Positions 3,082 to 56,900 of a DNA stretch of 64,000 nt are shown in pieces. Below the pieces are notes generated by a model. The model saw nothing but the letters and a program-made list of their open reading frames with translations, did no database searches and was not told where the DNA came from. Positions within the stretch are counted from its first letter, which is position 1. Each line of letters begins with the position of its first letter. The DNA is taken from the IMG/VR virus record IMGVR_UViG_3300047472_000309, positions 1 to 64,000 of that record; one strand, 5' to 3'. A program made the position numbers and the translations under genes.

Positions 3082-3131
3082 TTCGACCGCTTACGCGGAA
3101 ATGGTTACTGCTGCGCTACGTGTTCAGCTGC

Positions 3132-5042: not shown

Positions 5043-5127
5043 AGTGCTATTCCTTGTTTCAGAATTATCGTTTAATACACTCGAGTGTATGCTAGAAAAG
5101 AGCGATACTCTATTCCAACACAGGTTA

Positions 5128-35431: not shown

Positions 35432-35714
35432 GTTTCATCCCAGAGTGGTTGGGGTCGCGTGGACCAAAGTGTCTATTCATAGTGAAAACTTACTGCCCAT
35501 CCTATGGCGATTTTTACTTGGGCGCTTTGCAGCTCGAAAGTCCCCGTCTGTAGCAGCCCCGGCGAATTAAATTTTAAATACTTATGACTGACATTTTCCT
35601 GCAGCTGGTGTTTTTGGCCAACTGATTTGGAGGGATACGGTCAGCCTCACCAGAGGACGCCAGGATGTTCAGCATCGTCTTCGAAACCATACCATTCAAC
35701 TAAGGAATCGCGAA

Positions 35715-37853
35715 ATGGCGAATGCAATTATCAACGCCGCTCCGATGACGAACTTCCTCGGCGTGCAGGATAACAGCACCCGAGCACTGGTTCCGATTCC
35801 GGAGAACCTGCCGACCCACCTGGCGAAGGTCTATCTGTATACGCAGACTGGCCCTGGCCCGAATCAGCCGATGCTGGTTGGCGGTGACGGCATGACCCAG
35901 ATGTACGGTGCCGACTCGTTCGACTATTTGAAGTCGTACGCGAACCACCAAACCGTGCTGGCCAATACGCTCAATGCAGCGGGCAACCAGATGATGATCG
36001 AGCGGGTCATTCCGACGGACGCAGCGCCGCGCGCGAACCTGCGCGTCTACCTCGATGTGCTGCCGACCAACGTGCCGGACTATGTCCGTAACGTGGACGG
36101 CTCGATCAAGCTCGACACGGGCGGCAACCCGGTGCAAGTGACCGGCGAAGGCGCCACGATCGCAGGCTACCAAGTGAAGTGGGTCACGGCCTACATCACC
36201 CCGGAAGAAGACGGCACGACCACCTTCGGCGCGGGCACGATCATTCCGGGCGACATGACCGATGGCACGTCCGCTCAATCGCAGCGCTACCCGATCCTCG
36301 ATCTGGAAGTGCCGCATATCGGTGCCGAAGGCAACTGGCACGGCTTCCGTATGTGGGCGCCCACCTCGGTGTCGAGCACGCCGATCAACGACGCGTATAT
36401 CACGGATGACTTGATGTATCCGTTCCGCTTCGCGTTCGCTAACAAGCCGAGCGCCAACGGTACGGCTGCCATTGTGGCAGGCCGCGATGGCTCGCAGTAC
36501 TACGATCTCGGCTTCAAGCCGGGCGTGATCGACAAGTCGACGACGCAGAAAATGTACGTCGGCGATCGCCTGATCCAGGCTTACCAGAATCTGCAACCGA
36601 CCGACGGTACGCCGCCGGTGTGGGGTCCGTTCGGCAAGCTCAAAGTGTACGACGACAATGTCGCCACGGTGCTGGCGCTGTTCTACGCAGCCGAGTTCCC
36701 GGTGGCGGGTGCCTTCAGCGACTTCACGGGCGCAGCAGGCGAGCAGTATCTGTTCAACTTCGTCTCGGGCGTGTCGAGCCAGAACGTGCCGTATCATTCG
36801 TTCCAGGTCGTCACGCAAGCGGCCAATGCCGTGCGCTTCACGCAGAATTCGACGATCTACGCATCGGGCGGATCGGACGGCACGATGAATGATGCGTCGT
36901 TCGCCACGCTGGTCTCTGCTGCAGTCGCCGGTTACGCTGATCCGAATGCGTACCTGCAAGATACGGCCACGTATCCGGAATCGATCCTGTACGACACGGG
37001 CTTCCCGCTCGCAACGAAGTACGATCTGTGCCAGTTCATCTCGGTCCGTAAGGATACCGCGGTGGTGCTCTCCGTCTACGACGGCAGCGGCCAGGTGATG
37101 ACGGCGGCTCAGGAATCGGCGCTCGCGATCGCACTGCGCACGCGTTTGCAGATGTACCCGGAGTCGGACTACTTCGGCACCGCCACGATGCGCGGCATGA
37201 TCATCGGTCGCTCCGGTACGTTGATCAACAGCCTGTACGGCAAGCGTTTGCCGCTCACCATCGAGTTCGCCGCGAAGGCAGCGAAGTACATGGGTTCGGG
37301 CGACGGCGTGTGGAAGTCGGTGTACTCGTTCGACAGCGACCCGTTGAATCAAGTCACGCTGATGACGGACATCAACGTGACCTTCACGCCTGCCTCGGTG
37401 CGCAACAGCGACTGGGACAACGGTCTCGTGTGGGTGGAATCGTACGGCCGTCGCTCGTACTACTTCCCGGCGTTCAAGACGGTGTACGACGACGACACCT
37501 CGGTGCTCACCAGCTTCTTCACCATGATGGGCTGCGTGGAACTCGAGAAGGTCGGCGACCGTATTCGGCGCAAATTCAGCGGCAACAGCAAGCTGAAGCC
37601 TGGCCAGTTGGTCGACCAGGTGAACAAGGAAGCGGTGAAGCAGACGAACCAGCGCTTCGATGGTCGCTTCACGATCATCCCGAACTGCTACTTCACGGCA
37701 GACGACACGCAACGCGGCTACAGCTGGACGCTGATGCTGAAGATCTACGCGGACAACATGGATACGGTGGAAACACTGATCATCCAGGCGAACCGTTCGT
37801 CGGATCTGTCGACCACCTCGGGTGGTACGGCCCAGCAGCTGATCGCGACCTAA
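35715..37853 (+). CDS. Contractile tail sheath protein (phiKZ gp29-like)
   Basis: 712 aa, YDTGFP and SDYFGT motifs, strong codon bias, followed by the tube gene. Confidence 0.92.
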   Translation: MANAIINAAPMTNFLGVQDNSTRALVPIPENLPTHLAKVYLYTQTGPGPNQPMLVGGDGMTQMYGADSFDYLKSYANHQTVLANTLNAAGNQMMIERVIPTDAAPRANLRVYLDVLPTNVPDYVRNVDGSIKLDTGGNPVQVTGEGATIAGYQVKWVTAYITPEEDGTTTFGAGTIIPGDMTDGTSAQSQRYPILDLEVPHIGAEGNWHGFRMWAPTSVSSTPINDAYITDDLMYPFRFAFANKPSANGTAAIVAGRDGSQYYDLGFKPGVIDKSTTQKMYVGDRLIQAYQNLQPTDGTPPVWGPFGKLKVYDDNVATVLALFYAAEFPVAGAFSDFTGAAGEQYLFNFVSGVSSQNVPYHSFQVVTQAANAVRFTQNSTIYASGGSDGTMNDASFATLVSAAVAGYADPNAYLQDTATYPESILYDTGFPLATKYDLCQFISVRKDTAVVLSVYDGSGQVMTAAQESALAIALRTRLQMYPESDYFGTATMRGMIIGRSGTLINSLYGKRLPLTIEFAAKAAKYMGSGDGVWKSVYSFDSDPLNQVTLMTDINVTFTPASVRNSDWDNGLVWVESYGRRSYYFPAFKTVYDDDTSVLTSFFTMMGCVELEKVGDRIRRKFSGNSKLKPGQLVDQVNKEAVKQTNQRFDGRFTIIPNCYFTADDTQRGYSWTLMLKIYADNMDTVETLIIQANRSSDLSTTSGGTAQQLIAT

Positions 37854-37919
37854 GCAATCCACGGGTGGGGGAGCCACGGCTCCCTCTCTAGCTGACATTC
37901 TTAAGAACAGGAGTTTTAC

Positions 37920-38840
37920 ATGAGCCGTATCGCACAAACGCTGTTGCCGCAAGGTTACGCGTTCGGCGCTGGCGTGAATATCCCGATGGCGGATCTGCAG
38001 TATTCCGCGCAAATGGGTTACGCACCGGATCTGACGGAGTGGGTCGGTAATCAGGCGTACGTGCGCCGGAACCTGATCGCTCTGTTGATCGAAGCCCCGA
38101 CCGCTTTCTCGGACCTGCCGAACCCGGACTACTGGATCGGCACGCTGCGCGCCCTGGTCGAGCTGCACCCGCTCACCATCACGGGCCTGAGCTCCACGCT
38201 CACGGTCGACACCACGGACGGCAACCCCGTCGGCGGTGGCGGTCAGGTGCAAGAAGAATTCACCGACGTGAAGGAAAGCCGTTCGCAGCCGAACTTCCGC
38301 TGGAACGAAAAGTACGGCATGCCGATCAACCGCTTCCTGCGCGGCTGGATTCAGTACTGCATGATGGACCCGAACAGCAAGGTCGCCTCGATCAACACGA
38401 TCGCGGGCAACCAAGTCACCGACATGCTGCCGGACCGTTACACGATGACCTGCGCGTTCATCGAACCGGACCCGACCCACACCAAGGTCAACAAGTCCTG
38501 GCTCGTGACGAACATGTTCCCGAAGACCTCGGGCGAAGTCACTGGTCAGCGCGATCTGAACAGCGGCGGCGAAATCGTGGCATACGACGTCGAGTTCGCA
38601 GGTATTGCGCAGTTCGGTCTGGGTGTCGACGCGTTCAACCAGACGCTGCTCAACGGCATCAACATCACTGGCGCGAACCCGTACGAGCGGGCACCGTTCG
38701 TCGATTCGATCGCCGCTGACGTGGCCAACTGGGGCACCTCGAACTACGCGCAAGGCATCAGCGACCTCGCTGCTGGCGCTGCGCAAGTTCAAGCCGGTCT
38801 GACCGGTAGCGACTCCCTCTCGGTGAACGTCACGTTCTAA
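37920..38840 (+). CDS. Tail tube protein (phiKZ gp30-like)
   Basis: 306 aa, FIEPDPT and NMFPK motifs; directly after the sheath gene. Confidence 0.88.
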   Translation: MSRIAQTLLPQGYAFGAGVNIPMADLQYSAQMGYAPDLTEWVGNQAYVRRNLIALLIEAPTAFSDLPNPDYWIGTLRALVELHPLTITGLSSTLTVDTTDGNPVGGGGQVQEEFTDVKESRSQPNFRWNEKYGMPINRFLRGWIQYCMMDPNSKVASINTIAGNQVTDMLPDRYTMTCAFIEPDPTHTKVNKSWLVTNMFPKTSGEVTGQRDLNSGGEIVAYDVEFAGIAQFGLGVDAFNQTLLNGINITGANPYERAPFVDSIAADVANWGTSNYAQGISDLAAGAAQVQAGLTGSDSLSVNVTF

Positions 38841-38867
38841 GACGCGAACCAAAAAAAGATGGATTAG

Positions 38868-38916
38868 CGGCATAGAGCCCAAGAGACCCGCAAAGGTCTC
38901 TTGGGCTTTTATGCTG
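38868..38916. repeat. CGGCATA-hairpin-TATG palindrome / bidirectional terminator
   Basis: AGCCCAAGAGACC-CGCAAA-GGTCTCTTGGGCT stem between convergent genes. Confidence 0.8.
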
Positions 38917-38924
38917 TTATGCCA

Positions 38925-39158
38925 TTAACGCGGGTAGAGGCGTTTGAACTGATCGGTGCGCTTGTAGCACTTTTCCTTCAGGCTGTACTCCATGTTGCCA
39001 GGAGCGAGCTGGTTGTACAACCCCAGATCGTTAGAAGCCTGCGGTTTCGAGATACCGAAGTAATCTTCGATCAAGCGCCGCCGAACACTGCCATAGTGGT
39101 CCAGCACTGTATCGATCAGGCGAATGCGTTGCTCAACCGCATAGTTCAGTTTGTCCAT
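38925..39158 (-). CDS. Standalone winged-helix protein resembling the N-terminal DNA-binding domain of CapW/BrxR WYL regulators
   Basis: QRIRLID...G.V.R..I..YFGISKPQASNDL..Y..LAPGNMEY matches the recalled CapW/BrxR wHTH pattern; GGAGGA RBS; no WYL domain. Confidence 0.8.
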   Translation of the reverse strand: MDKLNYAVEQRIRLIDTVLDHYGSVRRRLIEDYFGISKPQASNDLGLYNQLAPGNMEYSLKEKCYKRTDQFKRLYPR

Positions 39159-39182
39159 ATTCCTCCAGTTGTTCGCGTTGTA

Positions 39183-40580
39183 TTAAGCCGTTTCGACTTC
39201 TTCCTCTTCCTCGAGCGGCTGATTTTCCAGCCACTTGTTGGAGATCACCTTGAACGAGCGACCGGTGACGTGGTTCTTCATTACGAGGCCTTCACGCAGC
39301 TTGGTGGACCCTGCAGCGAGCAGCGCTGACGGGCCGTCGGCGAGCTTCAGCAGTGCCTTGATATCAGCGGGCAGCTTGATGCGAGTCAGCTTCGGATCAA
39401 CCGGGATGTAATTCAAACCCAGGTAAGCAGCGATCGCTTTGGTTTCATCCGGCGTGAACCGGTAAGTGCCGTTGCCATAAGCACGGTACACAAAGAACTG
39501 ATCGACTGGGAAGCCTTCCGCACCGCCATTGAACGATGGCCCCACCATTTCACCCTGGACTGCAACGATCTTGCCGTGGGCGAATTCCAGCCCGATACCC
39601 TTGGCAATCGACACATCCATCATCAACGCCTTGTTCAGCGCTTTCAGATTGGCAGTAATGTCGTTGTTGATCATCCAACGCACGAGTGGTACACACTTCG
39701 GATCGTACTCGGTCTTCCAGGTCGGTACCGGACAGGCACCACCGCGCAGTCGCCGCGGCACGAAGCGCATCCAGTCCGACAGATAGACACGGAACGATTC
39801 TTTCCAGGTATAAGGGACGGTTTCGGTACGTAGCGAGAAGTTACGTTGCGCCAGACCAATGGAGCCGTCGTCCAGATCCTGGTAGGCCATGGCCGACTCA
39901 CCGTCGAGCTTGATCGAGCCCTCCCAGTCGTCGCCTTCTTTCACGAGCCGTGGGTATTCCTTGCCCAGGTTCTGTACGCGCTCTTCGTCTGACTTCACGT
40001 GACCACGCGGGAAGTCTTGCAGACCATCGACGAGAATCCCCTTGATCAACCGCATGCGTAGCTTCCACCACCAGCTGTTCGTACCGCGCCCGCCTGCACC
40101 AGATTCTTCGGCTAGACGCCGTAGGTATTGCTTGTACTCGACCGGGTTCACGTACTTCAGAATGCCGAGCTCCTGCGTGATGTTGACTTCATCTTCGCTA
40201 TGTACGGCCTGCGTGACCTTCATAAGCAACGCCGGAATGCTCTGCAGGTTCTTCAGCTGCATGAGTAGTCCCTGCGAGAGCGTCGAGCGCAGCTTGAGCG
40301 TCTTGATCACGGCATACTCCTTCTCGCCGTTTTCCATGTCCTTCTTCACCAGCAGGTACTTCTTATCGAAGTCTCCCCAGACCGGCGAGTCAAGCGGCAC
40401 GGCTGCATCGATCTCGAAGTACACAGCCGTCTGTCCGACCTGATACAGGTCTTTCTCGACCACGCACTCCCAACCCCCGACGACCGCGATCTCCAGCCGA
40501 TCGGCCTTCTTGATCGGCTTGATCTCATCGATCTTGACGATACGGGCGAGCGCCCGCGTTTCTTCTTTTACGAACGGCAT
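39183..40580 (-). CDS. RNA ligase (Rnl2/DRB0094-like) with N-terminal OB fold
   Basis: Start MPFVKEE; ADRLE..V.GW OB domain; nucleotidyltransferase motifs KLDGES, QGEMVG, REGLVMK and FKVIS. Confidence 0.9.
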   Translation of the reverse strand: MPFVKEETRALARIVKIDEIKPIKKADRLEIAVVGGWECVVEKDLYQVGQTAVYFEIDAAVPLDSPVWGDFDKKYLLVKKDMENGEKEYAVIKTLKLRSTLSQGLLMQLKNLQSIPALLMKVTQAVHSEDEVNITQELGILKYVNPVEYKQYLRRLAEESGAGGRGTNSWWWKLRMRLIKGILVDGLQDFPRGHVKSDEERVQNLGKEYPRLVKEGDDWEGSIKLDGESAMAYQDLDDGSIGLAQRNFSLRTETVPYTWKESFRVYLSDWMRFVPRRLRGGACPVPTWKTEYDPKCVPLVRWMINNDITANLKALNKALMMDVSIAKGIGLEFAHGKIVAVQGEMVGPSFNGGAEGFPVDQFFVYRAYGNGTYRFTPDETKAIAAYLGLNYIPVDPKLTRIKLPADIKALLKLADGPSALLAAGSTKLREGLVMKNHVTGRSFKVISNKWLENQPLEEEEEVETA

Positions 40581-40591
40581 TGTAATTCTCT

Positions 40592-40993
40592 TTAGATAAG
40601 TACGTCGCGAATAAACGGAACGCGAAACTGCGCCTGCTCTTTCAGCCAAGCGCGGGTCTGCCAGTAGTCCTTGTGCCAGATCGAATCAATCTTACAATCG
40701 TGATCGACACTCAGCGTAAAGCCAAACTCATCCCCCGTCTCTAACACAAAGACGAGATGATAGCCGAGCTGCCAGCATTGGTCCCACCATTCATCTTGCT
40801 GATCAATGATGGCGGGCGTGAAGTACCAGGAGGCGGCTTGCGCGCCAGAGTCAAACGACAGATGCAGTCGCTGAAGGGCGCGCAGATAACCCATCTGAAT
40901 CTCGAGCATCATGAAGTTATACGTTGCTTCATCACGCGCATGGTGATGCAAGAATAACTGCAAACGAGTATCGAGATTAAGATGACGTGCCAT
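40592..40993 (-). CDS. Hypothetical protein
   Basis: Start MARHLNL with GGAG RBS. Confidence 0.7.
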   Translation of the reverse strand: MARHLNLDTRLQLFLHHHARDEATYNFMMLEIQMGYLRALQRLHLSFDSGAQAASWYFTPAIIDQQDEWWDQCWQLGYHLVFVLETGDEFGFTLSVDHDCKIDSIWHKDYWQTRAWLKEQAQFRVPFIRDVLI

Positions 40994-41432
40994 CAGGGAG
41001 CTCCGGTTTCGGAAAATGATCTTTGGTGATCTCACCCATGATCCGTACGCGCCAACCCATGGATTCAAGATGATTCTTCGCGTGCTGGATGAATAAGTGA
41101 CGGTGGCAAAACACCCCCGCCGGGCAGTAGCACCCATACGCAGCGTATGGGTACACGGAGAGGCGATCCCACACTGCTCGATGCAGGTCACGGGACTCCA
41201 CCATCTTGTCTTCGTAAAGCTCCGTGTAGCTCTGCTCGTTCAGGCGCCCTTCCTTGTACGCCTTCACATTCTCCCAGTCGGGCGCAAATGCCAGGACCCC
41301 GTCCTTCGCAGTAGTATTAATGAGTTTTATTTTTTGCTTGCCACGAGCAGTTTCGATTTCCTCATTCTCGATTCGTCGCCATTGGGCTATCTGAATCGTC
41401 CAGAGGAAGAACTGGGGAGGTTTCTCTTCCAT
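40977..41432 (-). CDS. DUF488-like protein (intact copy with a replaced N-terminus)
   Basis: FAPDW and CYCPAGVFCHRHL motifs; AAGGA RBS inside the endonuclease gene. Confidence 0.75.
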   Translation of the reverse strand: MEEKPPQFFLWTIQIAQWRRIENEEIETARGKQKIKLINTTAKDGVLAFAPDWENVKAYKEGRLNEQSYTELYEDKMVESRDLHRAVWDRLSVYPYAAYGCYCPAGVFCHRHLFIQHAKNHLESMGWRVRIMGEITKDHFPKPELPDGTSS

Positions 41433-42198
41433 TTAATTCCTTGTAGATCCCTGCGTTAACGCGATTGGTGATCGTTGTGGTGGTTAGCCCAAGCTCTTTA
41501 GCGGCTAACCCTCGGCTGGCATAGACAACATCGTCTATAACGACTGGTTTAGCGCGATAAAGCATACCCAGGTGTTTGTTAAGCACAGTCTCAGGAGGAT
41601 CTTTTCTCCCTAGGGCTACCTCACTCAGTTTCTTTTTGTGTTCTTCACTGAGATGACCACCAAGTTTTGCTTGTCGCATAACCTCTTTGGCTTCTGGCGA
41701 AACTACGTGCGTTCGGCCAGTACTGCTGAGTCTGAATTTTTCGATTGCTTCTGGAGAATGTCTGTAGCCTTTGTTGTAGCCGGGATTATTCTGATGCTCC
41801 TGAAGCAAAGCTTGTCGCAATTTCTCGACATGTTCAGGAGACAGTTTTCTTCCTACTAATTTCTCCTTCATTCTTTTTATTGAATCCGGAGATTGGCCTA
41901 CAGAACAATGCCGCGCATCATCAGACAAGTTCAAGAAAAGCGGACTCCCATAGAACTCATCAATGATAGATTGTTCAAGGTCAAACGCCGCTTCTCTGTT
42001 CTCAACTTCTACAGACACGAAGTCAAAATTGGGATTACGATTATACGCTCGTTGAAATTTATAATTCGGATGCCGCTTATTCCTCAGAGCACTCCTATGT
42101 TTACTCTCTCGATAAACATCATCTTTCGTACTACCCGCATAAACCTCGTCAGTCTCGGGATTGTGAAAGATGTAGACTTTGTGGTTTTCTTCAGGCAT
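41362..42198 (-). CDS. GIY-YIG homing endonuclease with NUMOD3 repeats
   Basis: KVYIFHNPETDEVYAGST, HPNYKFQRAYN, repeated S-P/E-E units, PVVIDDVVYAS HTH; AT-rich insert. Confidence 0.9.
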   Translation of the reverse strand: MPEENHKVYIFHNPETDEVYAGSTKDDVYRESKHRSALRNKRHPNYKFQRAYNRNPNFDFVSVEVENREAAFDLEQSIIDEFYGSPLFLNLSDDARHCSVGQSPDSIKRMKEKLVGRKLSPEHVEKLRQALLQEHQNNPGYNKGYRHSPEAIEKFRLSSTGRTHVVSPEAKEVMRQAKLGGHLSEEHKKKLSEVALGRKDPPETVLNKHLGMLYRAKPVVIDDVVYASRGLAAKELGLTTTTITNRVNAGIYKELNGRETSPVLPLDDSDSPMATNRE

Positions 42199-47726: not shown

Positions 47727-50700
47727 TTAGCTCTTGTAGGCAGCGACTGCTCGTTGGGCAATCACGTCCAGCAGGGTAGTGGTGGTGCCAATGATCGCAG
47801 GGCTATTCACAATACGATCGTAGACACTCTTGTAACCGAATACGCAGTCGATGACTGTGCCCGACTCCGTCTTCAGTTCGTTCTCCATCACCTTACCGAA
47901 CACCGTCTTCATCTGGTTGGCAAACACACCCTTGTCACCGACCCCTGCGCTCACATCAGCCGTGATGTAGATCTGAATCGCCACTGTATCCAACGCCAGT
48001 GGTTCTCCATCGACCCGGAAGCCCTCATCGGTACTTCCCGTGAAGCCCTTTCGTCCAGCGGACTTATGGCGCTTCGCCATCTCACGATCCGACATGTTCG
48101 TCAGTTGCCGCAGCGACTCCGACATGTCCTCTTTGTCCCCGTGATAGAAGACTTCAATACGCTCAACCACACCCTTGGTCTTGGAGAGCGGCACCTGAGC
48201 AGACAGATTGCGCAAGGTGTCCAGCGACTCCTCATCAAAGAGGTGATTGTTCGCGGTGACCGCGTCCTCGATTATGCATAAGATGTCCTCGCTGCCCACG
48301 CGCTGGCCGGTTTTCACCAACCGATGCACGGCTTGATCGAAGTTCACCACGATCTTACGCACCTTGGTGGTCTTCGTGGTCAAGAGACCCGACACCCGTT
48401 TGCTAATCGCCGAGGAGTCTTCCAGGGTATCGGTCGACTCCAACAGAACCGTCTTGACAATCGTCCCAGCCTTCCACACCACCTGATTCGGATTCAACGT
48501 ATCGCGCTCGAAGAATCCGGTGTTGTGACACAAGAGGTCGCCTGCCTTAAACACTTGACCTTCAACGACGTCAGCGACTACTTCATGCGCGACGGTAAGA
48601 CCCGCTGCGTTGCCATAACGACGACCCAGTTCGATCCCTTTGCGCGTACCATCGGCGTACTCGATCACCATGCCGGTGTCCGAGACGCTGATCACCTTGC
48701 CGTCCTTCTTGGCCGTATAGGCGTAGAGGTCTGAAGTCCGATGCGCGAGCACCTGTTCATAGCCGGTACGCACCGAGGCTTGCGTGTAACCCGCGCAGGC
48801 AATCCCGTGAGAATGCTGAATACCCACGAAGTTCACCCGCTTCGCATCATCGCGATCCGAGCCCGGTGACAAGAGCGCCGCAGTTGAGAGCAGGGCCGTC
48901 GCACCCGTCACTCCAATCTCGTACGGATTAGAGGTCCCGCGCAGTGAGTTAAACTGCGGGTCCGCCGACAGGTAGGTGTTGATCGCCACGTCGGAGGAGT
49001 CCTTGGTCGACTCGGAGATGGTCCCCATGTCGTTGCGATGGTACTGACGCGTGCGCTTGGTCATCGAGCGCGACCCCCGTCCACCGGTCCCCGAGAACGT
49101 GACGGCCTCGACGTCTTTCAGGTTTTCCACCGGATTGATGTCCGATACCTGGTTCTTGGCCGGGTCGGTCTGAATCGCCGTCCAGACAGCGTACGGGTTC
49201 AGGTCGATCGGATGCTTGTTCTTGCCCGGGCGGCCGTTATGAATCCGAATCGCCCGAATCAGTTCCGCATACACCGCCCCTGCCATACGCTCGTAGCCCT
49301 TGATCCGCATGTACTTCGGATCGAGCTCGTCGGGGTGGGTATCCGAGAGTAGCATCTCCACCGAGCGCACCAACAGCCCCTGGAACGTCAGCGGCTCTTT
49401 CATGCCCTGCAAGATTTCCCGTGTGATCGGATCGATAAACATCTGGTACATCAAATCGATCTCACGCAGGTAACGCTCCGAGCGACCATTGCCTTCGAGG
49501 ATGTTCAGATAGACGCCGCGCCGATCAAACTCGAACACACTGTAGTTACGGATCTGTCGATGGAACTCGTTAAAGCCGCCGAGGATCATCGCCGCGAAGG
49601 TGTTATCGCGCGGGAAGATCAGCGTCTCATCCGAGAACGCAATCGCGTACTCGTTATCTTGCAGGTTCAGACGCTGGCCCGCGTTCACACGGCGTGCCGT
49701 CACCTTCAGCGCCCGCATGAGCTTTTCCAAGCCCATTTGGTAGCCCAATACCACCGCCAGCGGAATCGTCCGACCCAGTACCTTGAGCTCCGCAAACTCC
49801 ACCGGGGCTTTCTTGGCTTCCAGATCCAGCAACTGCTCAAAGCCCGGCAGAGCGTCATCGGTATTCTGAATCACACCATCGATCAAACCGACCAGGGCCA
49901 TCGAGTTATCCGGATACATGACGATATACTCACCGCCTTCCGCCTGCCCGCAGATGATCTTACCTTCGCTTTCGAGCGCCGCCAAGACGTCCGGTCCGTA
50001 GAGCTTCTCACGCTTTGAGTGATCAAAGAGGAAGTTGAGCTTCTTCGAGAAATGGGCCGAATCCACCGTGAAACCCCGAAAGCCCATCGCCATGGATGAA
50101 TACAGACGCGGCGCTTCAAAGAGGTTGTCGAACACGTCGCCCGGATGCAGATTCACCACCGTGGTGTTCTCGTTATCCAGTCCCATCGCCATGATCGCAT
50201 TACGCATCCACTGCGAACGATCGTTCACGCGTTTTTCGCTCCGTGACACAAACACCTTACCGTAGTAAGACGTCAGCGCCACCCGATCCGGTGCAATCTT
50301 ACGAATCGGCATGTCACCCTTTTGCTTACGGATGCGATAGCGCGTACCGTTGGCCATGTAAGTGCCATCGTCTTGCAACAGCGGCAGCTTAAAGTGCAAG
50401 GTAGAGGCCGTGCCCTGCACCGGCACAATCCGTACGTGGTACATCACGTACGAGCCCATCACATCCTCCACTTCTTCACGCTCGTAGGACGTCACGCAGA
50501 TCCCGGCGTTTTGCAACGCCAGTACCATGCCTGCCACATCCTTTTCCAGCAGCGTCTCGATGTAGCGCTGGTCGAACTCCAGCAGCGACGATTTTAACAT
50601 CGTCTTATCCAGCACGGTCGGAATGTCCTTGATGGCGGGCGATTCCACGATCTTGGTTTCGTGTGGCTGGACTTGCGAGAAGTCGTGCAGGTTACCTTCG

Positions 50701-52265
50701 CCCTTGGGCGCAGGCAGGTTCTTGGGCGACTGTGCCAGTTGCGTGAAACGACGATACTCCGCCGCACTGACCATCCCGTCATCCGCCAGGCGATTGAGCA
50801 AAGCAATCACGCCGTCTTCCGGTTGCGGCACGTCATTCAGCTCGACCACTTCCGCCGGATGCGGAATCTCACCCGCGCTCACCGCGACGGCTTGACGACT
50901 GAGCTTATCGAGCGTTTGCAGATCCTTTTCAATCTGCGCGTCTTCAGTCGGATCAAAGACAAAGTCCTCGGCCTTCTCGGTCGGGGTGAATTCATCGGTC
51001 GGGGTGCTCTTGACCGAGTTGGTCTTCACTGCCGTCGGCTTCAGAATTGCTTCGCCCGTAATCGGATCGACCTTGGGGAGACTGCCCGTTTGCTTGAAGG
51101 TCGGCAAGAGACTCTCGTCTTCCTCGTCGTCCTTGTTTGCATCGAACTGCTCATCGGGATCGTAATGCTGCGCTTCCGGTACGCCATCGGCGCTCGCGTC
51201 TTGCGCATCCGCCGCCTGGATCGACTCTTCGTCTTGGGCGGCGTCTTCAGCTTCCGGACCCACATCCGTTCGCACTTGGAAGAGCGACATCGACATGCGC
51301 AGCAAGCGACGCTGCATCTGCACCGGCGACAGTCCCTTTTGATTCGCCTGCGGATTCGCCGCGAGCTCTTCCTCGGTCGCCACGCGCCAGCGATTGATGA
51401 CACCCAGATTCACCACGAACCACCGACCCGATTCCGTGAAGATCAGATTCACGCGATCCAGATGCTCATCATTGACGTTGGCAATCAGCGAGCTATGGCG
51501 GGCGTCGCCTGCCCACTTCCACAGCTCGAGCAGCATCAGGGCTTCGGGCGTATGGAACACCTTGAGCGTACGCTGGTTCATTGCTTCCATCGCTACGCTA
51601 TCCACATAGTGGGGCGAGGCTTGCACCAGATCCAGATACTCCTGATCGACGGACTCTAGCGCCAGCTTGATACCTTCGGCGGCATGGCTCAGCACGTCGC
51701 CTTCGATAAGCGACTCCGAGGCAATGCGCAAATCCGTCAAGCCCGGCAAAATCTTCGGCAGCCGGATTTCGATGAACTGATGCCGGGTCGAGTCTTTCGC
51801 CAGATCGCCAATGCGCTTCCAGACCGTGGCTGCAATATTGTACCAGCGGTTGTACTCCGCAAACATCGAGCGCTGATAACGGTAGAGCCCCGCCAGAAAG
51901 CCGTAGTTCATCACGAACGGGACATTCACATCGCGCAGCGCAGCGTTCAGGTTGATCTGACGACGAAACCGGCGATGATGCTGGTGGTACTTGCGAATCT
52001 CGGTTTCCACCGGCACTGCGACCCGCCGTGGCATGCCCTTGTCCGAGAGCAACTCGATCTGATGCATGATCGGGATGGGACGCGCCACATGCCGAAAGAG
52101 AAACTCATCCGAACGCGGGCCGATATCCACCGCGCTTTCACTCACGTAGTGAAAGATCGACTCACGCGGCAGCTCCAGCAAATCGAGCTTGGGCATGGGT
52201 GGGTTCGTCAACTGCGAAGCCGTGCGCACACCAAAGCGTCGAAAGAAGTTGTTGTAGAAAATCAT
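47727..52265 (-). CDS. Virion RNA polymerase beta-like subunit (phiKZ gp178-like)
   Basis: 1512 aa; GTGGR, DDAKRVNF..IQ, EDSSAIS and GDK....QMK beta motifs; acidic N-terminal region. Confidence 0.93.
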   Translation of the reverse strand: MIFYNNFFRRFGVRTASQLTNPPMPKLDLLELPRESIFHYVSESAVDIGPRSDEFLFRHVARPIPIMHQIELLSDKGMPRRVAVPVETEIRKYHQHHRRFRRQINLNAALRDVNVPFVMNYGFLAGLYRYQRSMFAEYNRWYNIAATVWKRIGDLAKDSTRHQFIEIRLPKILPGLTDLRIASESLIEGDVLSHAAEGIKLALESVDQEYLDLVQASPHYVDSVAMEAMNQRTLKVFHTPEALMLLELWKWAGDARHSSLIANVNDEHLDRVNLIFTESGRWFVVNLGVINRWRVATEEELAANPQANQKGLSPVQMQRRLLRMSMSLFQVRTDVGPEAEDAAQDEESIQAADAQDASADGVPEAQHYDPDEQFDANKDDEEDESLLPTFKQTGSLPKVDPITGEAILKPTAVKTNSVKSTPTDEFTPTEKAEDFVFDPTEDAQIEKDLQTLDKLSRQAVAVSAGEIPHPAEVVELNDVPQPEDGVIALLNRLADDGMVSAAEYRRFTQLAQSPKNLPAPKGEGNLHDFSQVQPHETKIVESPAIKDIPTVLDKTMLKSSLLEFDQRYIETLLEKDVAGMVLALQNAGICVTSYEREEVEDVMGSYVMYHVRIVPVQGTASTLHFKLPLLQDDGTYMANGTRYRIRKQKGDMPIRKIAPDRVALTSYYGKVFVSRSEKRVNDRSQWMRNAIMAMGLDNENTTVVNLHPGDVFDNLFEAPRLYSSMAMGFRGFTVDSAHFSKKLNFLFDHSKREKLYGPDVLAALESEGKIICGQAEGGEYIVMYPDNSMALVGLIDGVIQNTDDALPGFEQLLDLEAKKAPVEFAELKVLGRTIPLAVVLGYQMGLEKLMRALKVTARRVNAGQRLNLQDNEYAIAFSDETLIFPRDNTFAAMILGGFNEFHRQIRNYSVFEFDRRGVYLNILEGNGRSERYLREIDLMYQMFIDPITREILQGMKEPLTFQGLLVRSVEMLLSDTHPDELDPKYMRIKGYERMAGAVYAELIRAIRIHNGRPGKNKHPIDLNPYAVWTAIQTDPAKNQVSDINPVENLKDVEAVTFSGTGGRGSRSMTKRTRQYHRNDMGTISESTKDSSDVAINTYLSADPQFNSLRGTSNPYEIGVTGATALLSTAALLSPGSDRDDAKRVNFVGIQHSHGIACAGYTQASVRTGYEQVLAHRTSDLYAYTAKKDGKVISVSDTGMVIEYADGTRKGIELGRRYGNAAGLTVAHEVVADVVEGQVFKAGDLLCHNTGFFERDTLNPNQVVWKAGTIVKTVLLESTDTLEDSSAISKRVSGLLTTKTTKVRKIVVNFDQAVHRLVKTGQRVGSEDILCIIEDAVTANNHLFDEESLDTLRNLSAQVPLSKTKGVVERIEVFYHGDKEDMSESLRQLTNMSDREMAKRHKSAGRKGFTGSTDEGFRVDGEPLALDTVAIQIYITADVSAGVGDKGVFANQMKTVFGKVMENELKTESGTVIDCVFGYKSVYDRIVNSPAIIGTTTTLLDVIAQRAVAAYKS

Positions 52266-53890
52266 GAATCGTAACCTGTCAGATTGTGGAACACCAAGGA
52301 CACGGTCGAGACTTCGATACTGGACATGAAGGAGCCGTCGGTACCGACGTAGGCGCGCTTCTTACTCAGGTGTGCCTTGACTTCCGCGATGGATTCGTCC
52401 GAGTACGTGACGTTACCCGAAGCGGTATCGCCGTCAAAGTCCGCGCCCAGTTTGCCAAGCTTGGCTGAGTGCGGCACCAGCGAGTTGATAAACGCACCGC
52501 CCGTAATCGGGAACTGATACGCCACCGGCGCATCCAGTCGTAGTTGCCACTGCTCATCGAGCTCCTTGCGAACCTCAGCCTTAATCGTCGTCTTCACATA
52601 GGCGAGCGACGGATAGATCGAGCCCACCCCGGTCACCGGGTAACGCGTCACAAAGAGCGGCAAGCCATTGATGGCCTGGAAGGTCGACAGATAGAGCAGC
52701 TCACAAAAGGTGAGCGGCGTCACATCTTTGCGACTGCGCTCAATGGGCACATCACCAATGTCCTGGAAGATCTTGTAGGTCCCGTCCGGGCCCTTGTAAA
52801 TGAGACCGAGGTAATAGCCTTCAATCTCCAGCGGCTTATGGCGCAGGTCCTCGTCTCCAAACGACGTGATCACCTTCTCGATGCCTTCGTTGGTCATCCA
52901 GCGATCGTAGCTTTGCGTCTTGAGTGTGACTTCGACTGGGCGCAGCGTCTTCTTGTCAATCAGCTTTACCGGCCGACCCACTTCAAAGAACACCTTGGAG
53001 AGAAAGCCGTTGCGAATGTTGTACATCGCAATCGGACGCGCCGCTTTCAACATCTGGTACAGGCCGATCACGGTGTTATTAAAGCCCACCGCGTCGGGTG
53101 CCCCCAGATAGGGACTGGACGTATCCATCGCCGTAATCACGTTTCGCGTGCCGTCCTGAATCCGCCGACTGGCCCACTTGCCCATCAGCAGCTTCTTCTT
53201 GCCCTGCACCATGTTTTCCAGCATGTCGTACAACTGGTTAAAGGTGAGCTGCAAGTTGTAGCGTGCGGTGTTGATCACTTCCGGTGCAGTCTTGACCGAC
53301 GCTTCGGAGATGGTGTTGGAGATCGCCAGCAGCTTGCGGTAAAAGGTGTTGATTTCATCCATCTGCACCCGACCGCCATCGAGCTCCACGTCACGCATCC
53401 CCGCAGGCATCACAATCACTTTGCTGGTGAGCGCCACGCTCTGGAACTTCTTCAAGAGCGACACATTCATTTCCCGTGTCACACTCTTGGTGTCACCGAA
53501 TTCGATGAGCTTCCAGTATTCCAGAAAGAATGCGTAGCCGGTACGGCCGGTAATTGAATTGCTGCGCTCAAAGTCTTTGGTTTCCGGATTCCACACCGCG
53601 TACTCAGTGCCTGCCATAATCGCAGCATAGAGGCGCTTGAGCTGGGCGAGTGCCCGATAGATCACCGGATGGAACACCGGGGCCTTGATGTCAACAAACG
53701 AAAAGCGCTGACTCCGGCGCTCATCCCCGACTTTGCCGAAGATGCTCACCGAGAAGAGTCCGCCTTCGTCGAAGTTGTGGGTCGCGCCATCGAAGATGTC
53801 TTGCTTCGTAACAGGTTTCACACCCACGAGCTTTTTCTCCGTGAGTTCAAGGATACTCACGTTAAATGGGACTTCGCTTTTCTGGGGCAT
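52262..53890 (-). CDS. Virion RNA polymerase beta'-like catalytic subunit (phiKZ gp180-like)
   Basis: GLFS..IFG, TRNVIT, TRYP and GADFDGD motifs; ATGA overlap with the beta gene. Confidence 0.95.
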   Translation of the reverse strand: MPQKSEVPFNVSILELTEKKLVGVKPVTKQDIFDGATHNFDEGGLFSVSIFGKVGDERRSQRFSFVDIKAPVFHPVIYRALAQLKRLYAAIMAGTEYAVWNPETKDFERSNSITGRTGYAFFLEYWKLIEFGDTKSVTREMNVSLLKKFQSVALTSKVIVMPAGMRDVELDGGRVQMDEINTFYRKLLAISNTISEASVKTAPEVINTARYNLQLTFNQLYDMLENMVQGKKKLLMGKWASRRIQDGTRNVITAMDTSSPYLGAPDAVGFNNTVIGLYQMLKAARPIAMYNIRNGFLSKVFFEVGRPVKLIDKKTLRPVEVTLKTQSYDRWMTNEGIEKVITSFGDEDLRHKPLEIEGYYLGLIYKGPDGTYKIFQDIGDVPIERSRKDVTPLTFCELLYLSTFQAINGLPLFVTRYPVTGVGSIYPSLAYVKTTIKAEVRKELDEQWQLRLDAPVAYQFPITGGAFINSLVPHSAKLGKLGADFDGDTASGNVTYSDESIAEVKAHLSKKRAYVGTDGSFMSSIEVSTVSLVFHNLTGYDS

Positions 53891-53967
53891 ATATCTTATC
53901 CTGCGGGTTTTAAGCCCAAACCTATGAGGGGCTCACGTGCAGCCCGACATCATTGGAGCCTGTGTTT

Positions 53968-56900
53968 ATGGCCAAGCAACAAAAATTCACGTTGAACGAT
54001 TTCCAGTTCGACAAGAACCTTGACGTGCCTGATTTCGATTTCGATCTCAAGCCGCCGAAGGATAACCGCAAGCCGGTTACCAAAGTCGCTGCGGGCCTGA
54101 AAGAAGGCATCAGCCTGTCGGCGAAGAACTCCGAGTTTATCAAGGGCGTCATTGAGAAAGCACTGCCTCGGGGATACGGCTCCGCGTATGATCTCGCCGA
54201 GAAATCGTTCGGATCGATAAAAAGTCTATACGATGATACGACCAAGGAAATCCGGCCGTTCATGAACGACTTGAAGCGCACGACGGCACGCTTGCTCCCG
54301 AAGGTGGAGCAGGCGATGCCGGACAAGCTCAAGAAGCAAGTGAAGGACTGGACTGAGACGGCGGACGCCAAACCGGGCAGCTCGAACTATGATCCTCGCG
54401 AAGCCGAGATCAGTGCGATGCTTGCAGGCTTCGCCCAGGTTCAGTCCGAACTCCAATACAAACAAACCACTGAATCAGACACCAAGGATCGACTCCGTGA
54501 AGGCCTCGAACAAGTCCGCCATCGGGACAAGCTTAAGCAGATGGACTCGCTGCGCGTTGGCATTGCTCAGCTTGTGGATTACCAGTCCAACGTTACCGCT
54601 AACTACCATCGCAAGTCGCTCGAGCTCCAGTACCGCCATTACTTCGTTGCTGTAGACGCACTGGAAGAAACCAAGCGCAGCAACGCAGAGATGCGCCTGC
54701 TCTTGCAAAGCGTGGTGCACAATACGGCGCTACCCGAGCAAGCCAAGCTCAAGGCTTCGGACACCTTCAAGGACATGGCCAAGCAACAGGCCATGAAGCT
54801 GATTGGCGGCACCATTCTTGGGCGCGGCCAGGAGTTCTTGAACAATCTCACCGGGAACCTGAAGAAGAACGCCTTGCGCACGGTGAAGGGCGGGCTGGGT
54901 CATGGTCGCTCAGGGATGGACATGTTAAACGGCGTCCTGGATGCTGATGACATGGCGCGTGCAATGGGCATGCAAACCGATCCGTATCATGCTGGCGGGA
55001 TGGTGGCCGGTGCGTTTGGCACAGGCATCATCGGGCAGTGGCTCGCTAAGAAGATGGCGCCGCACTTGCAAAAGATGCCAGGTGTAAAGAAGTTCGGTAA
55101 CAAATTGCAGTACGGCGTTGAGAACGTGCCGCAGATGCTCGGCGAATGGGCGCGCTCGAACAAGCACGAGAATGGTGGCATCACCGACGGTCTGGTACGC
55201 TTCTTGAAGATGAACGTCAGGAGCTCGCAGAAGATGCAAACCGGTCTGCAAAAGGATACCGTTGAAGGCATGGGGGAGCCGTCCTACTTTAGCCGTCAGT
55301 CGGCAAAGTCGTTGAACGAGATCATTCCTGGCTACCTCGCCCGGATTCTGCGTGAGTTGCAAGTCACCCGCACCGGGGACCCGAACGTCGAGATGACGCA
55401 TTATGACTACACCAAGAACAAGTTCGACACGCAAAGCAATGTGCGTACGAACGCGTTTAAGTCCCTGGTCAAAGACAACGAGCGCAAGTGGACCACCGAG
55501 TCGATCGATAGCCTGATCGATGAAGTTACCACTAAGACGGGCAAAACCCTCACCCCGGAACAGAAGAAGATTCTCGGTAGTCAGCTCTTGCGTAACAACG
55601 TCAAGGGTCGCCTAGGTGGGGAAGAGGTGCTCGGTAACCGGCGCCGTTATGATGGTGATGCCGCACCGCACGCTGATGCGTTTGCCGATCTGTTTAAGAC
55701 GTACTTCCGCAACGATCACGATAACGAGCGCAAGCACTCGTTTGCCAATGCGTACAATGCATTTGGTCAGTATGCGTCCGCCTCGCGTGAAAAGGTCCAG
55801 CATTTTTCCAATCTGGGCATGAACGACTTCTTGAATGAGGCGGGCCTGCTTAATGATGACGAAGATGGCGTGAAGCTCGAGCAGTTCTTTGACTACTATT
55901 ACGGCAAGGACTTTAACCCGGCCGCGGGGAGTACTGCGAATGGTTTTCGTCCCGCTCAGGCTGGGGCAGCCGCGGCTGCTGTGGGTCCGCGTCGTCGTCG
56001 GCGGCGCGGCAATGCAGGCAGTATTGGTCGCGCAAATCGCGGTGGGGTGCATCAAGCCCTGTCTCAATTGGCAGCGGGTCCGGTCCCGTCCTTTGCAACG
56101 CCTGGTCTGATTACGCCGAGCTTTGTACCGACGACCGCTAATGCGGGTGCCTATAGCCCGCAACCGAACGCCGCCGTCGGCACGCCCAAGTATCGTCAGC
56201 AGTTGGCGAACTACTTGCAAAAGCTGGGAGTACCGGTTCAGCAAGTCAATGCGCTGGTGGAGCAAACTGTTTCTGCCATGGGAGCAACGGCGCACGGTGC
56301 AGTACAAGGTGCGGCAGGTTTGCAAGCCGCGGGTACGCAACGCGCTGGCGGGTTCTTTAGCAATGCACGAGATCACGCGCGTGAGTTTGCTAACCGGACG
56401 GCTTCGGGTGCACGCGCGCTGCATGAGAATGCCAAGAACCACATCGAGACGTTGCTCGAGAAGCTCTCTGAAGGTGTAGGGTCCATTAGCGATGGGATCA
56501 AGGCCATCCAGGAACGTTTCGCCGAAGCGCTGCCAGTGATGGTGGTCGGTAACGCCGCAGATGGTTCGATCCCGACGGGTGCCGCAGGTACGGGTCGCAA
56601 GGTACGCTGGTGGAACAAGTCCATCAAGGACGGTGTCAAGAGCCTCGCCTCGGGCGCATGGGGCGGCATGAAGAGTGCAGGCAAGCTGGGTAACTGGTTG
56701 GTCGGCAGCAGCTTCGGTGGTCTCTTCGGCACGGCCAAGGCGGTGGGCGGTATGGCAACCGGTCTCGCAGGCAAGGTGATTGACAAGGCCCGCGGCTTTA
56801 AGGATGTGTATTCAGAAGAGACAGGTCCGCGTAAGGTCCTGCTCTATGCGGCACGTCTGAAGGCTGGTGAATACTTCGATGTCAAGACGGGCAAACCCGT

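Follow-up and report, generated by a model that had tools for sequence, protein, structure and literature searches.

A predicted CapW/BrxR-type DNA-binding domain without a sensor, encoded as a stand-alone protein by a nucleus-forming jumbo phage

A nucleus-forming jumbo phage carries a small gene whose 77-aa product corresponds only to the DNA-binding head of the bacterial repressors CapW and BrxR, which keep anti-phage operons switched off. The same stand-alone head is found in many unrelated phages. It may therefore be a means by which phages hold host defences off, a function that is inferred here from sequence and structure prediction alone. The gene lies on the minus strand at positions 38925..39158 of a 64,000-nt stretch (positions 1 to 64,000 of IMG/VR record IMGVR_UViG_3300047472_000309, hereafter the window). 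A chimallin gene at window positions 3132-5042 supports the assignment to the nucleus-forming, phiKZ-like phages. A preceding sequence-only reading had described an intact 77-aa gene with a strong ribosome-binding site ending cleanly at a terminator element, without naming the strand, and this observation was confirmed. It had further proposed that the phage kept only the operator-binding module of a CapW/BrxR-type repressor, which could hold defence promoters off or interfere with the host regulator. This interpretation is supported only in part, namely for the homology, the missing sensor and dimerisation parts, and the nucleus-forming character of the phage.

The gene is a single ATG-initiated open reading frame with its stop codon at 38925-38927. 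The start codon is unambiguous, since an in-frame stop lies 8 codons upstream and no other start is present, as seen in an identical copy (locus L015). The motifs RIRLID, FGISKPQASNDL and LAPGNMEY are located at residues 11-16, 34-45 and 51-58, respectively. A strong Shine-Dalgarno sequence, GGAGGA (39161..39166, minus strand), is separated from the ATG by only 2 nt and thus has a short spacer. A perfect 13-bp stem with a 6-nt loop (38876..38907) starts 18 nt after the stop codon, between this gene and the convergent tail-tube gene. Its adjacent T-run (TTTTAT) is on the plus-strand side, so it is first of all the terminator of the tube gene, while on the minus strand a T7 run follows only about 18 nt beyond the stem. 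The claim that the gene ends at a terminator element is therefore right as anatomy and looser as function. Only 84 nt separate the gene from the tube gene, and no degraded WYL remnant lies downstream. Upstream, a co-directional RNA ligase gene (39183..40649, minus strand; PHA02142 OB-fold plus RNA_ligase) is separated by only 24 nt without an intervening hairpin, so both genes are probably on one transcript. The true start of the ligase gene is probably near 40583, because the homologue is 466 aa. Copies of the 77-aa gene in sister phages differ mostly at synonymous sites (pN/pS 0.06-0.19), indicating purifying selection. Together with the homologues described below, this shows that the open reading frame is more than a chance reading frame.

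To identify the protein, it was compared with known sequences and structures. A phmmer search of the PDB returned only CapW and BrxR above noise: CapW 7tb5 (E = 1e-11), 7tb6 (4e-11) and 9c5g (7e-6), and BrxR 7qfz (1e-4). In addition, 21 short homologues were found at E-values of 1e-11 to 1e-43, and a 96%-identical homologue carries the precomputed Pfam hit PF26109 (WHD_BrxR). Profile searches of Pfam, PHROGs, PADLOC and NCBIfam gave nothing for the 77-aa protein, with no PADLOC hit even at E up to 10. For Pfam the reason is that the copy searched lacks PF26109, not absence of homology. The AlphaFold2 model (pLDDT 95.2) was compared with the PDB by Foldseek. The top 15 hits are all CapW or BrxR winged helices (TM 0.81-0.95, rmsd 0.5-1.3 Å), followed by a gap to the next folds (IdeR, IclR) at about 0.55.

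The predicted structure was then mapped onto residues with a described role in DNA binding. Helix alpha-1 (residues 6-22; 39093..39143, minus strand) contains R11, which corresponds to the BrxR DNA contact R11 and is 99-100% conserved in both stand-alone and full-length proteins. Helix alpha-2 (residues 27-34; 39057..39080, minus strand) starts with R27, the equivalent of S. maltophilia CapW R32 (alignment offset +5). Arginine is present here in 92% of stand-alone and 100% of full-length sequences. The recognition helix alpha-3 (residues 38-51; 39006..39047, minus strand) is preceded by one residue of the S37-K38-P39-Q40-A41-S42 motif, in which S37, Q40 and S42 correspond to CapW S42, Q45 and S47. 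The CapW exchanges R32A and S42/Q45/S47-to-AAA abolish operator binding, and all four equivalent residues are kept in the phage protein. Within the clade, conservation of these contact residues together with R11 is 55-99%. K38 sits at the position of the base-reading R38 of Acinetobacter BrxR. The beta-hairpin wing (residues 56-67, strands 56-59 and 64-67; 38958..38993, minus strand) has conserved Y58, K63 and Y65, compared to the BrxR wing contacts H59, K64 and Y66. This last mapping is approximate, since the ungapped alignment covers residues 9-52 only. The protein carries a net charge of +4.

Compared to CapW (7TB6 from S. maltophilia, 7TB5 from P. aeruginosa PA17 and 9C5G from R. leguminosarum), the domain superposes at TM 0.86-0.92 and rmsd 0.5-1.0 Å with 40-41% identity. 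The conserved residues include R32, described as typical of CapW rather than BrxR. Compared to BrxR (7QFZ from E. fergusonii, 7T8K/7T8L from Acinetobacter), the fold is the same (TM 0.83-0.95) and R11, S37 and Q40 are conserved position for position. However, identity is only 27-28%, position 38 is K instead of R, and K46 and R47 are replaced by G and L. Both CapW and BrxR are wHTH-WYL-WCX repressors that bind a palindrome of about 20 bp overlapping the -10 element, whereas the phage protein ends at residue 77, where the CapW linker begins. The BrxR dimer core is formed by helices 71-119 plus the swapped WYL domains. The phage protein thus has no linker helix, no WYL domain that binds ssDNA and releases the repressor, no WCX domain and no known dimerisation element. 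Two full-length relatives (P0094 and P0162) hit Pfam WYL, while the 77-aa proteins do not. CapW/BrxR genes lie beside, and usually divergent from, the defence operon they control, whereas the neighbours here are the tail sheath, tail tube and RNA ligase genes of a phiKZ-like phage.

A survey of homologues, which the sequence-only reading had asked for, revealed a stand-alone clade of 73-90 aa (WHD_BrxR only) encoded in phage or prophage DNA. In these proteins the domain runs to the C-terminus and ends in F-K/A-R-x-Y/W-P, with the alpha-1 signature Y-A-V-E-Q-R-L/I-R-x-I-D. In all 59 additional loci the reading frame stops 0-4 residues after the domain. In a profile search the top ~70 hits are nearly all shorter than 230 aa, and full-length proteins (282-308 aa) first appear at ~78 bits and stay a minority below. 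Only 3 switches between full-length and short forms are needed on the tree. Most residues that distinguish the clade from full-length proteins are on alpha-1 (Y6, A7, Q10, R13, L18, H21 and Y22, against W, G, R, E, R, W and E). Identity to the nearest full-length proteins is only 37-46%, and the idea of a recent capture from the host regulator was rejected for this reason.

Carriers are unrelated phages (phiKZ-like, SU10-like, Mu-like, lambdoid prophage and siphophage), and the gene is mostly located in early or accessory gene blocks. Homologues occur in phiKZ-like, SU10-like and Mu-like phages (between MuB and GemA/Mor), in a roughly 65-kb phage with ParA and lysis genes, in a Luteimonas prophage early operon downstream of the CI/Cro pair, and in Stenotrophomonas phage Sonora. 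The 75-aa Sonora protein (CPT_Sonora_088), which was left out of alignment A2, is 59% identical to the window protein and lies in a block of small early genes of a 64-kb siphophage. The 97-aa protein A0A411AW77 of the myophage Pantoea phage vB_PagM_LIET2 is only 29% identical but matches the model at TMq 0.89. Both are stand-alone proteins in cultured phages and are annotated as hypothetical or uncharacterized. A phiKZ-like relative as distant as FLC9 keeps the gene at the same locus with 65% identity. The gene is an accessory gene of this jumbo phage, being absent from the close relative FLC9, where the tube gene abuts the RNA ligase gene. Among deposited phage genomes the family is rare (1 of 50,697). 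No conserved neighbour gene was found across 48 non-redundant loci, and the flanking proteins on the other large viral contigs carrying the gene were uninformative as to phage type. On plasmids the same domain was found in 354 records at 39-45% identity, and nearly all of the 30 listed are annotated as full-length "WYL domain-containing protein". One example, the full-length gene on plasmid pKP4, lies divergent from the cyclase gene of a type III CBASS operon. A related, distant sensor-less variant (P0112) lies two genes from an Acb2/Tad1-family gene (33.1 bits, cut-off 27). Full-text literature searches and papers on CapW and BrxR, not covering all journals, gave no description of a phage-encoded stand-alone CapW/BrxR domain.

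Inverted repeats and promoters were searched around the gene cluster. Only terminator-like hairpins and one unexplained 21-bp palindrome inside a coding region were found, and no operator-like inverted repeat was detected next to the gene or at the head of its cluster. The promoter of a plasmid CapW shows only an imperfect palindrome that the repeat finder missed. Aca proteins, small HTH autorepressors of anti-CRISPR operons, are dimers that act on a palindrome in their own promoter, next to acr genes. Neither such a palindrome nor an acr gene was found here, and the upstream RNA ligase has no proven role in counter-defence. Like the Aca proteins, which tune counter-defence genes, phage-encoded copies of host regulators, such as phage VqmA or LuxR-type receptors, are small phage-encoded DNA-binding proteins. 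These copies read or rewrite host regulation but keep their sensor domain, which this protein has lost.

Taken as established by the analysis are the CapW/BrxR-type fold, the retention of the described DNA-contact residues, the end of the protein exactly before the linker, WYL and WCX parts, and the membership in an old, selected clade carried singly by many unrelated phages. Everything on function, including operator binding and repression, is inferred. In our favoured but tentative view, the protein would be made in the cytoplasm early in infection and bind CapW/BrxR-type operator half-sites on host or other resident-element DNA, which overlap the -10 element of defence promoters. Lacking a WYL sensor, it could not be released by the ssDNA signal that removes the host repressor, and operons such as CBASS or BREX would stay at basal level when infection or DNA damage would otherwise induce them. 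A host target would fit this phage, as it encodes chimallin and multisubunit RNA polymerases. In phiKZ-like phages the DNA sits inside a protein shell and is transcribed by phage polymerases, so a repressor that occludes a sigma-70 -10 element has its natural targets on host DNA. Several points speak against this view. The missing dimerisation, a caveat already raised in the sequence-only reading, is real, and since dimeric CapW itself binds at only 0.2-3 µM, a monomer on one half-site might be too weak. The base-reading position 38 is K here, but A or V in the CapW structures and variable across the clade, and parallel WYL repressors show no crosstalk. Moreover, according to published work CapW- or BrxR-dependent induction is not needed to stop a first infection, so that the benefit to a lytic phage is indirect at best. 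The clade is only 37-46% identical to the nearest full-length proteins and has its own alpha-1 residues, and it is not a recent copy of a host regulator. The family is also rare among deposited phage genomes.

Only slightly less favoured, although itself rather unlikely, is an ordinary phage transcription regulator derived from the WHD_BrxR family that binds the phage's own genome, as an Aca-like autoregulator of an early or accessory operon or as a timing switch. Small HTH proteins are common in phage early regions, and the homologues sit in early operons of temperate phages. One variant is fused to a Cro/CI-type HTH_3 domain in a temperate phage's early region. The recognition-helix residues vary between subgroups (SxPQAS against GxATATR), as expected if each phage has its own sites. 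On the other hand, neither an operator-like repeat nor a conserved partner gene was found, shell-enclosed DNA transcribed by phage polymerases fits poorly with a -10-occluding repressor, and the clade occurs in lytic and temperate phages with unrelated regulatory circuits.

Other readings appear unlikely. The retained DNA contacts together with lost dimerisation, and the presence in some prophages, would be compatible with a competitor that evicts the dimeric host repressor from one half-site without blocking RNA polymerase and thereby switches defence operons on, for example to raise the defences of a lysogen. However, the gene lies in lytic or early operons rather than in lysogeny-expressed positions, and for strictly lytic carriers such as this jumbo phage and Sonora the induction of abortive-infection systems would be harmful. 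A free wHTH domain might also dock on the host repressor, in which each WYL domain packs against the wHTH of the other chain, or on another host factor. Alpha-1 is indeed the most conserved part of the stand-alone clade, but the residues invariant in full-length proteins on this helix (W21 at 100%, R18, W6) are exactly the ones replaced, which argues against mimicry of that surface, while the DNA-contact residues stay conserved. A decaying remnant of a captured full-length CapW gene is very unlikely. The lower GC content of the gene (about 51-52%, compared to 58-65% in neighbouring structural genes) suggests foreign origin, but the low pN/pS, the retention at the same locus in a diverged relative, the same precise C-terminal end in 59 loci and the absence of a WYL remnant speak against decay.

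CapW and BrxR-type WYL repressors control many defence systems, including CBASS and BREX, and recent work shows that their release by ssDNA primes survivors against phages that carry inhibitors. Known phage counter-defences act on the defence proteins or on their signalling molecules. It is possible, though doubtful on present evidence, that stand-alone WHD_BrxR proteins are a new class of counter-defence, phage-made "super-repressors" that would lock WYL-controlled operons in the off state and block the induction or priming response to infection or DNA damage, including during prophage induction, a strategy that would have spread horizontally among unrelated phages. Silencing of the defence promoter by mimicry of the repressor's DNA-binding head would be a transcription-level mechanism, and would give a direct handle on why these operons are inducible at all. 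Even if the protein turns out to regulate phage genes, it documents a sensor-less offshoot of a defence-regulator family that phages have kept and exchanged for a long time.

The region 38925-39158 of the window was found to hold a single ORF on the minus strand, running from ATG to TAA and encoding 77 aa. The three motifs that the sequence-only reading had singled out are present, with RIRLID at residues 11-16, a second motif at residues 34-45 and LAPGNMEY at residues 51-58. The start is unambiguous, because an in-frame stop lies 8 codons upstream, as determined in the identical copy of the gene at locus L015. A GGAGGA Shine-Dalgarno sequence is located at 39161-39166, only 2 nt from the ATG. 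A perfect 13-bp hairpin at 38876-38907 starts 18 nt after the stop codon. However, the T-run next to this hairpin is on the plus-strand side, and the hairpin is therefore primarily the terminator of the convergent tail-tube gene and may serve both genes. Only 84 nt separate the two genes, so there is no room for a degraded continuation. Three sister-phage copies differ from the window mostly at synonymous sites (pN/pS of 0.06-0.19). The observation made by the sequence-only reading is thus confirmed: this is a real, selected gene.

The window comes from a phiKZ-like, nucleus-forming jumbo phage. The tail sheath (phiKZ_gp29PR) lies at 35715-37853 and the tail tube at 37920-38840. A 1,060-aa ORF running antisense to both genes (35700-38882, minus strand) is an artefact of high GC content and not a gene. 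Phage RNA polymerase beta-type subunits lie at 47727-53890, and a DNA polymerase and a head protease are encoded elsewhere. The shell protein of the phage nucleus is encoded at 3132-5042 on the minus strand, where a 636-aa ORF matches the Pfam model Chimallin_Phikzvirus (E = 9e-55); a 651-aa ORF on the opposite strand (3120-5075) is a GC-driven shadow ORF. At 53953-60282 on the plus strand, a 2,109-aa protein has a tail-fibre-like N-terminal part (phrog_3201) and an endolysin or chitinase-like domain near residues 1700-1950, and is probably a virion-associated cell-wall hydrolase. An IMG/VR contig of 310,654 bp carries the 77-aa gene and its flanking sheath, tube and RNA ligase genes at 100% protein identity. 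The nearest deposited phage is Burkholderia phage FLC9, with 84% nucleotide identity over parts of the region.

The 77-aa gene follows an RNA ligase gene (39183-40649, minus strand; PHA02142 OB-fold plus RNA_ligase) after a gap of 24 nt without a hairpin, and the two are probably co-transcribed. The ligase is only 57% identical to its FLC9 homologue and is far less conserved than the sheath and tube genes. In FLC9 the tube gene abuts the RNA ligase gene with a 74-bp spacer, and the small gene is absent. A second phiKZ-like lineage (loci L017 and L070) is about as far from the window phage as FLC9 is (tube 86%, sheath 79%), and keeps the gene at the same position, but at only 65% identity. The gene is thus an old accessory gene of this lineage, which evolves faster than its neighbours and has been lost, or was never gained, in FLC9. 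Its GC content (about 51-52%) is below that of the flanking structural genes. Further upstream, two overlapping ORF calls on the minus strand (40977-41432 and 40592-41191), which include a DUF488-N3a-like gene (phrog_2450), resolve by comparison with another locus, L003, into genes of about 123 aa and 133 aa. Inside the DUF488-like coding region, at 41132-41152, lies a perfect 10+10-bp palindrome with a 1-nt centre (ACCCATACGC-G-GCGTATGGGT). We estimate that about 0.07 such repeats are expected by chance in this 5.7-kb stretch; the loop is too short for a terminator. A GIY-YIG homing endonuclease with NUMOD3 and an I-TevI-like DNA-binding tail (41362-42198, minus strand) sits in a markedly AT-richer patch (GC 0.41-0.48 against about 0.58 around it), and is probably a recent mobile insertion 2.2 kb upstream of the 77-aa gene.

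To identify the protein, all PDB sequences were searched with phmmer. This search returned CapW from P. aeruginosa PA17 (7tb5, E = 1e-11), S. maltophilia (7tb6, 4e-11) and R. leguminosarum (9c5g, 7e-6), and BrxR from E. fergusonii (7qfz, 1e-4), whereas nothing else was significant. The matches cover residues 3-76 of the query and roughly the first 90 residues of proteins of about 300 residues. An AlphaFold2 model built on 22 family members has a mean pLDDT of 95.2 and comprises helices at residues 6-22, 27-34 and 38-51 and a beta hairpin at 56-67. A Foldseek search of the PDB with this model gave 15 hits with E below 1e-3. These are all CapW or BrxR chains, with query-normalised TM of 0.81-0.95 and rmsd of 0.5-1.3 A, while the next folds, IdeR, IclR and DtxR, score about 0.55. 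An unrelated HTH as best structural match, which had been set beforehand as an outcome speaking against the assignment, was therefore not found. Close homologues carry the precomputed Pfam hit PF26109, named WHD_BrxR. A scan of the window protein against a Pfam copy was empty, which is explained by the absence of this model from that copy.

In S. maltophilia CapW, R32A as well as the triple change of S42/Q45/S47 to alanine each abolish operator binding, and R32 is noted to be typical of CapW rather than BrxR (PMC9122588). In the ungapped phmmer alignment these residues correspond to R27, S37, Q40 and S42 of the phage protein, and all four are present. The Acinetobacter BrxR-DNA structure lists the contacts S37, R38, Q39, Q40, R11, K46, R47, H59, K64 and Y66 (PMC9122589). 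After correction of a 3-residue offset in the deposited chain, BrxR numbering equals that of the phage protein over residues 9-52. R11, S37 and Q40 are conserved, the base-reading R38 is K38, and K46 and R47 are replaced by G and L. The protein has a net charge of +4. Judged from its sequence, it therefore looks fully competent to bind DNA, but since position 38 is variable its sequence specificity need not equal that of any characterised CapW. In CapW and BrxR the dimer is held by linker helices (BrxR residues 71-119), by WYL domains swapped onto the wHTH of the partner, and by WCX domains. Binding of ssDNA to the WYL domain pushes the two wHTH domains apart and releases the operator. The phage protein ends at residue 77 and has neither the sensor nor any known dimer contact.

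We next asked how widely such stand-alone domains occur. A word-indexed search limited to proteins of 42-135 aa found 21 homologues of 73-86 aa, at 47-96% identity. A profile of these was searched against 1.84 billion representative proteins without a length limit and gave 2,110 hits. The top ~70 are nearly all shorter than 230 aa, and full-length proteins of 282-308 aa first appear at ~78 bits and remain a minority of the listed hits below that. Scans of IMG/VR and of one genome per species gave 56 and 3 loci, respectively, and in all 59 the reading frame stops 0-4 residues after the domain. On a tree of 217 domain sequences only 3 changes separate clear full-length from clear short proteins, although the alignment is short and deep branches are weak. 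A position-by-position comparison of 146 short and 22 full-length domains showed that the DNA-contact residues are retained in both classes, while a set of alpha-1 and C-terminal positions is class-specific. At positions 6, 7, 10, 13, 18, 21, 22 and 73 the short clade has Y, A, Q, R, L, H, Y and R, where the full-length proteins have W, G, R, E, R, W (invariant), E and P, respectively. This is what one expects if the surface that packs on the linker or WYL domain in the full-length protein has been free, or re-used, for a long time.

Contexts with gene calls revealed a variety of carriers. The clade is found in the phiKZ-like lineage, with the same synteny as the window, in an SU10-like podophage, and in a phage of about 65 kb with ParA, TrfA or RepL, and a lysis cassette. 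It is also found in a Mu-like prophage, between the MuB-like ATPase and DUF3164/GemA/Mor, in a block of small phage ORFs, in the early rightward operon of a Luteimonas terrae prophage, downstream of a divergent CI/Cro-type pair, and in a block of small genes in Stenotrophomonas phage Sonora. No neighbouring family is conserved among the loci compared; the neighbours are recombination and replication genes and small unknown proteins. In two unrelated loci, one with the domain at L007:8225-8554 and the other a member of the alignment A3, phage-encoded H-NS or MvaT-type xenogeneic-silencer domains lie within a few genes of the stand-alone WHD gene. These are another class of protein that silences horizontally acquired host genes. 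Among 50,697 deposited phage genomes only Sonora carries a member, and BFVD adds a more distant 97-aa protein of Pantoea phage LIET2. On plasmids the picture is the opposite. Here, 354 records have hits at 39-45% identity, and nearly all of the 30 listed are annotated as 'WYL domain-containing protein'. On Klebsiella plasmid pKP4 the gene lies divergent from a type III CBASS operon and is followed by a purine phosphorylase gene.

Two architectural variants were observed. Protein P0024 (145 aa; locus L076, 4863-5300) is a natural fusion of a Cro/CI-type HTH_3 domain with a WHD_BrxR domain and lies in the early region of a temperate phage of about 45 kb. The other variant, a 171-aa protein, carries a CapW-like wHTH plus a 90-aa C-terminal part that is unknown (locus L079, 4205-4720). 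It sits in a phage block with a Dam-like methyltransferase, a ParB-like protein and a metallopeptidase (PhageMetallopep), two genes upstream of an Acb2/Tad1-family protein (L079, 5379-5789; 33.1 bits, Pfam cut-off 27). This link to a known anti-CBASS/anti-Thoeris family is a single case and only suggestive.

The domain family itself is known and has a Pfam model. In contrast, full-text literature searches and the papers on the family that were consulted gave no description of the stand-alone phage clade or of its possible use against defence regulation. The phage protein shares the winged helix of CapW and BrxR, but it is not a member of this repressor family in the strict sense, because it lacks the WYL domain and the WCX/linker dimer parts and does not lie beside a defence operon.

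The analysis establishes the identity and predicted fold of the protein, the retention of the DNA-contact residues, the absence of the sensor and dimer parts, selection on the gene, and a phage-specific distribution, mostly in early or accessory regions. Binding to CapW/BrxR-type operator half-sites is inferred, as is the idea that the protein, being insensitive to ssDNA, would keep the promoter occupied when the host repressor leaves. The interpretation offered by the sequence-only reading, an uninducible repressor of host defence operons, is therefore partly supported: homology and absence of the sensor are confirmed, while the functional claim is plausible and testable but unproven. A host target would fit this particular phage, since the DNA of phiKZ-like phages is inside the chimallin shell and is transcribed by phage polymerases, for which genes are present here, and since CapW-type repression works by covering a sigma-70 -10 element. 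On the other hand, dimeric CapW binds at only 0.2-3 uM, so a monomer may be weak. WYL repressors show no crosstalk, so the phage protein would have to match a specific operator. Moreover, induction through CapW or BrxR is not needed to stop a first infection. We hold the super-repressor reading only tentatively. An ordinary regulator of phage genes is somewhat less likely but remains a serious alternative, whereas a competitor that derepresses the host operons and a decoy acting by protein-protein contact both seem unlikely, and a functionless remnant can be nearly discounted.

If the super-repressor reading is correct, we infer that the most coherent benefit to the phage would be either a block of the priming response described for these repressors or, for temperate carriers, a block of the DNA-damage-triggered induction of abortive systems at the moment of prophage induction.
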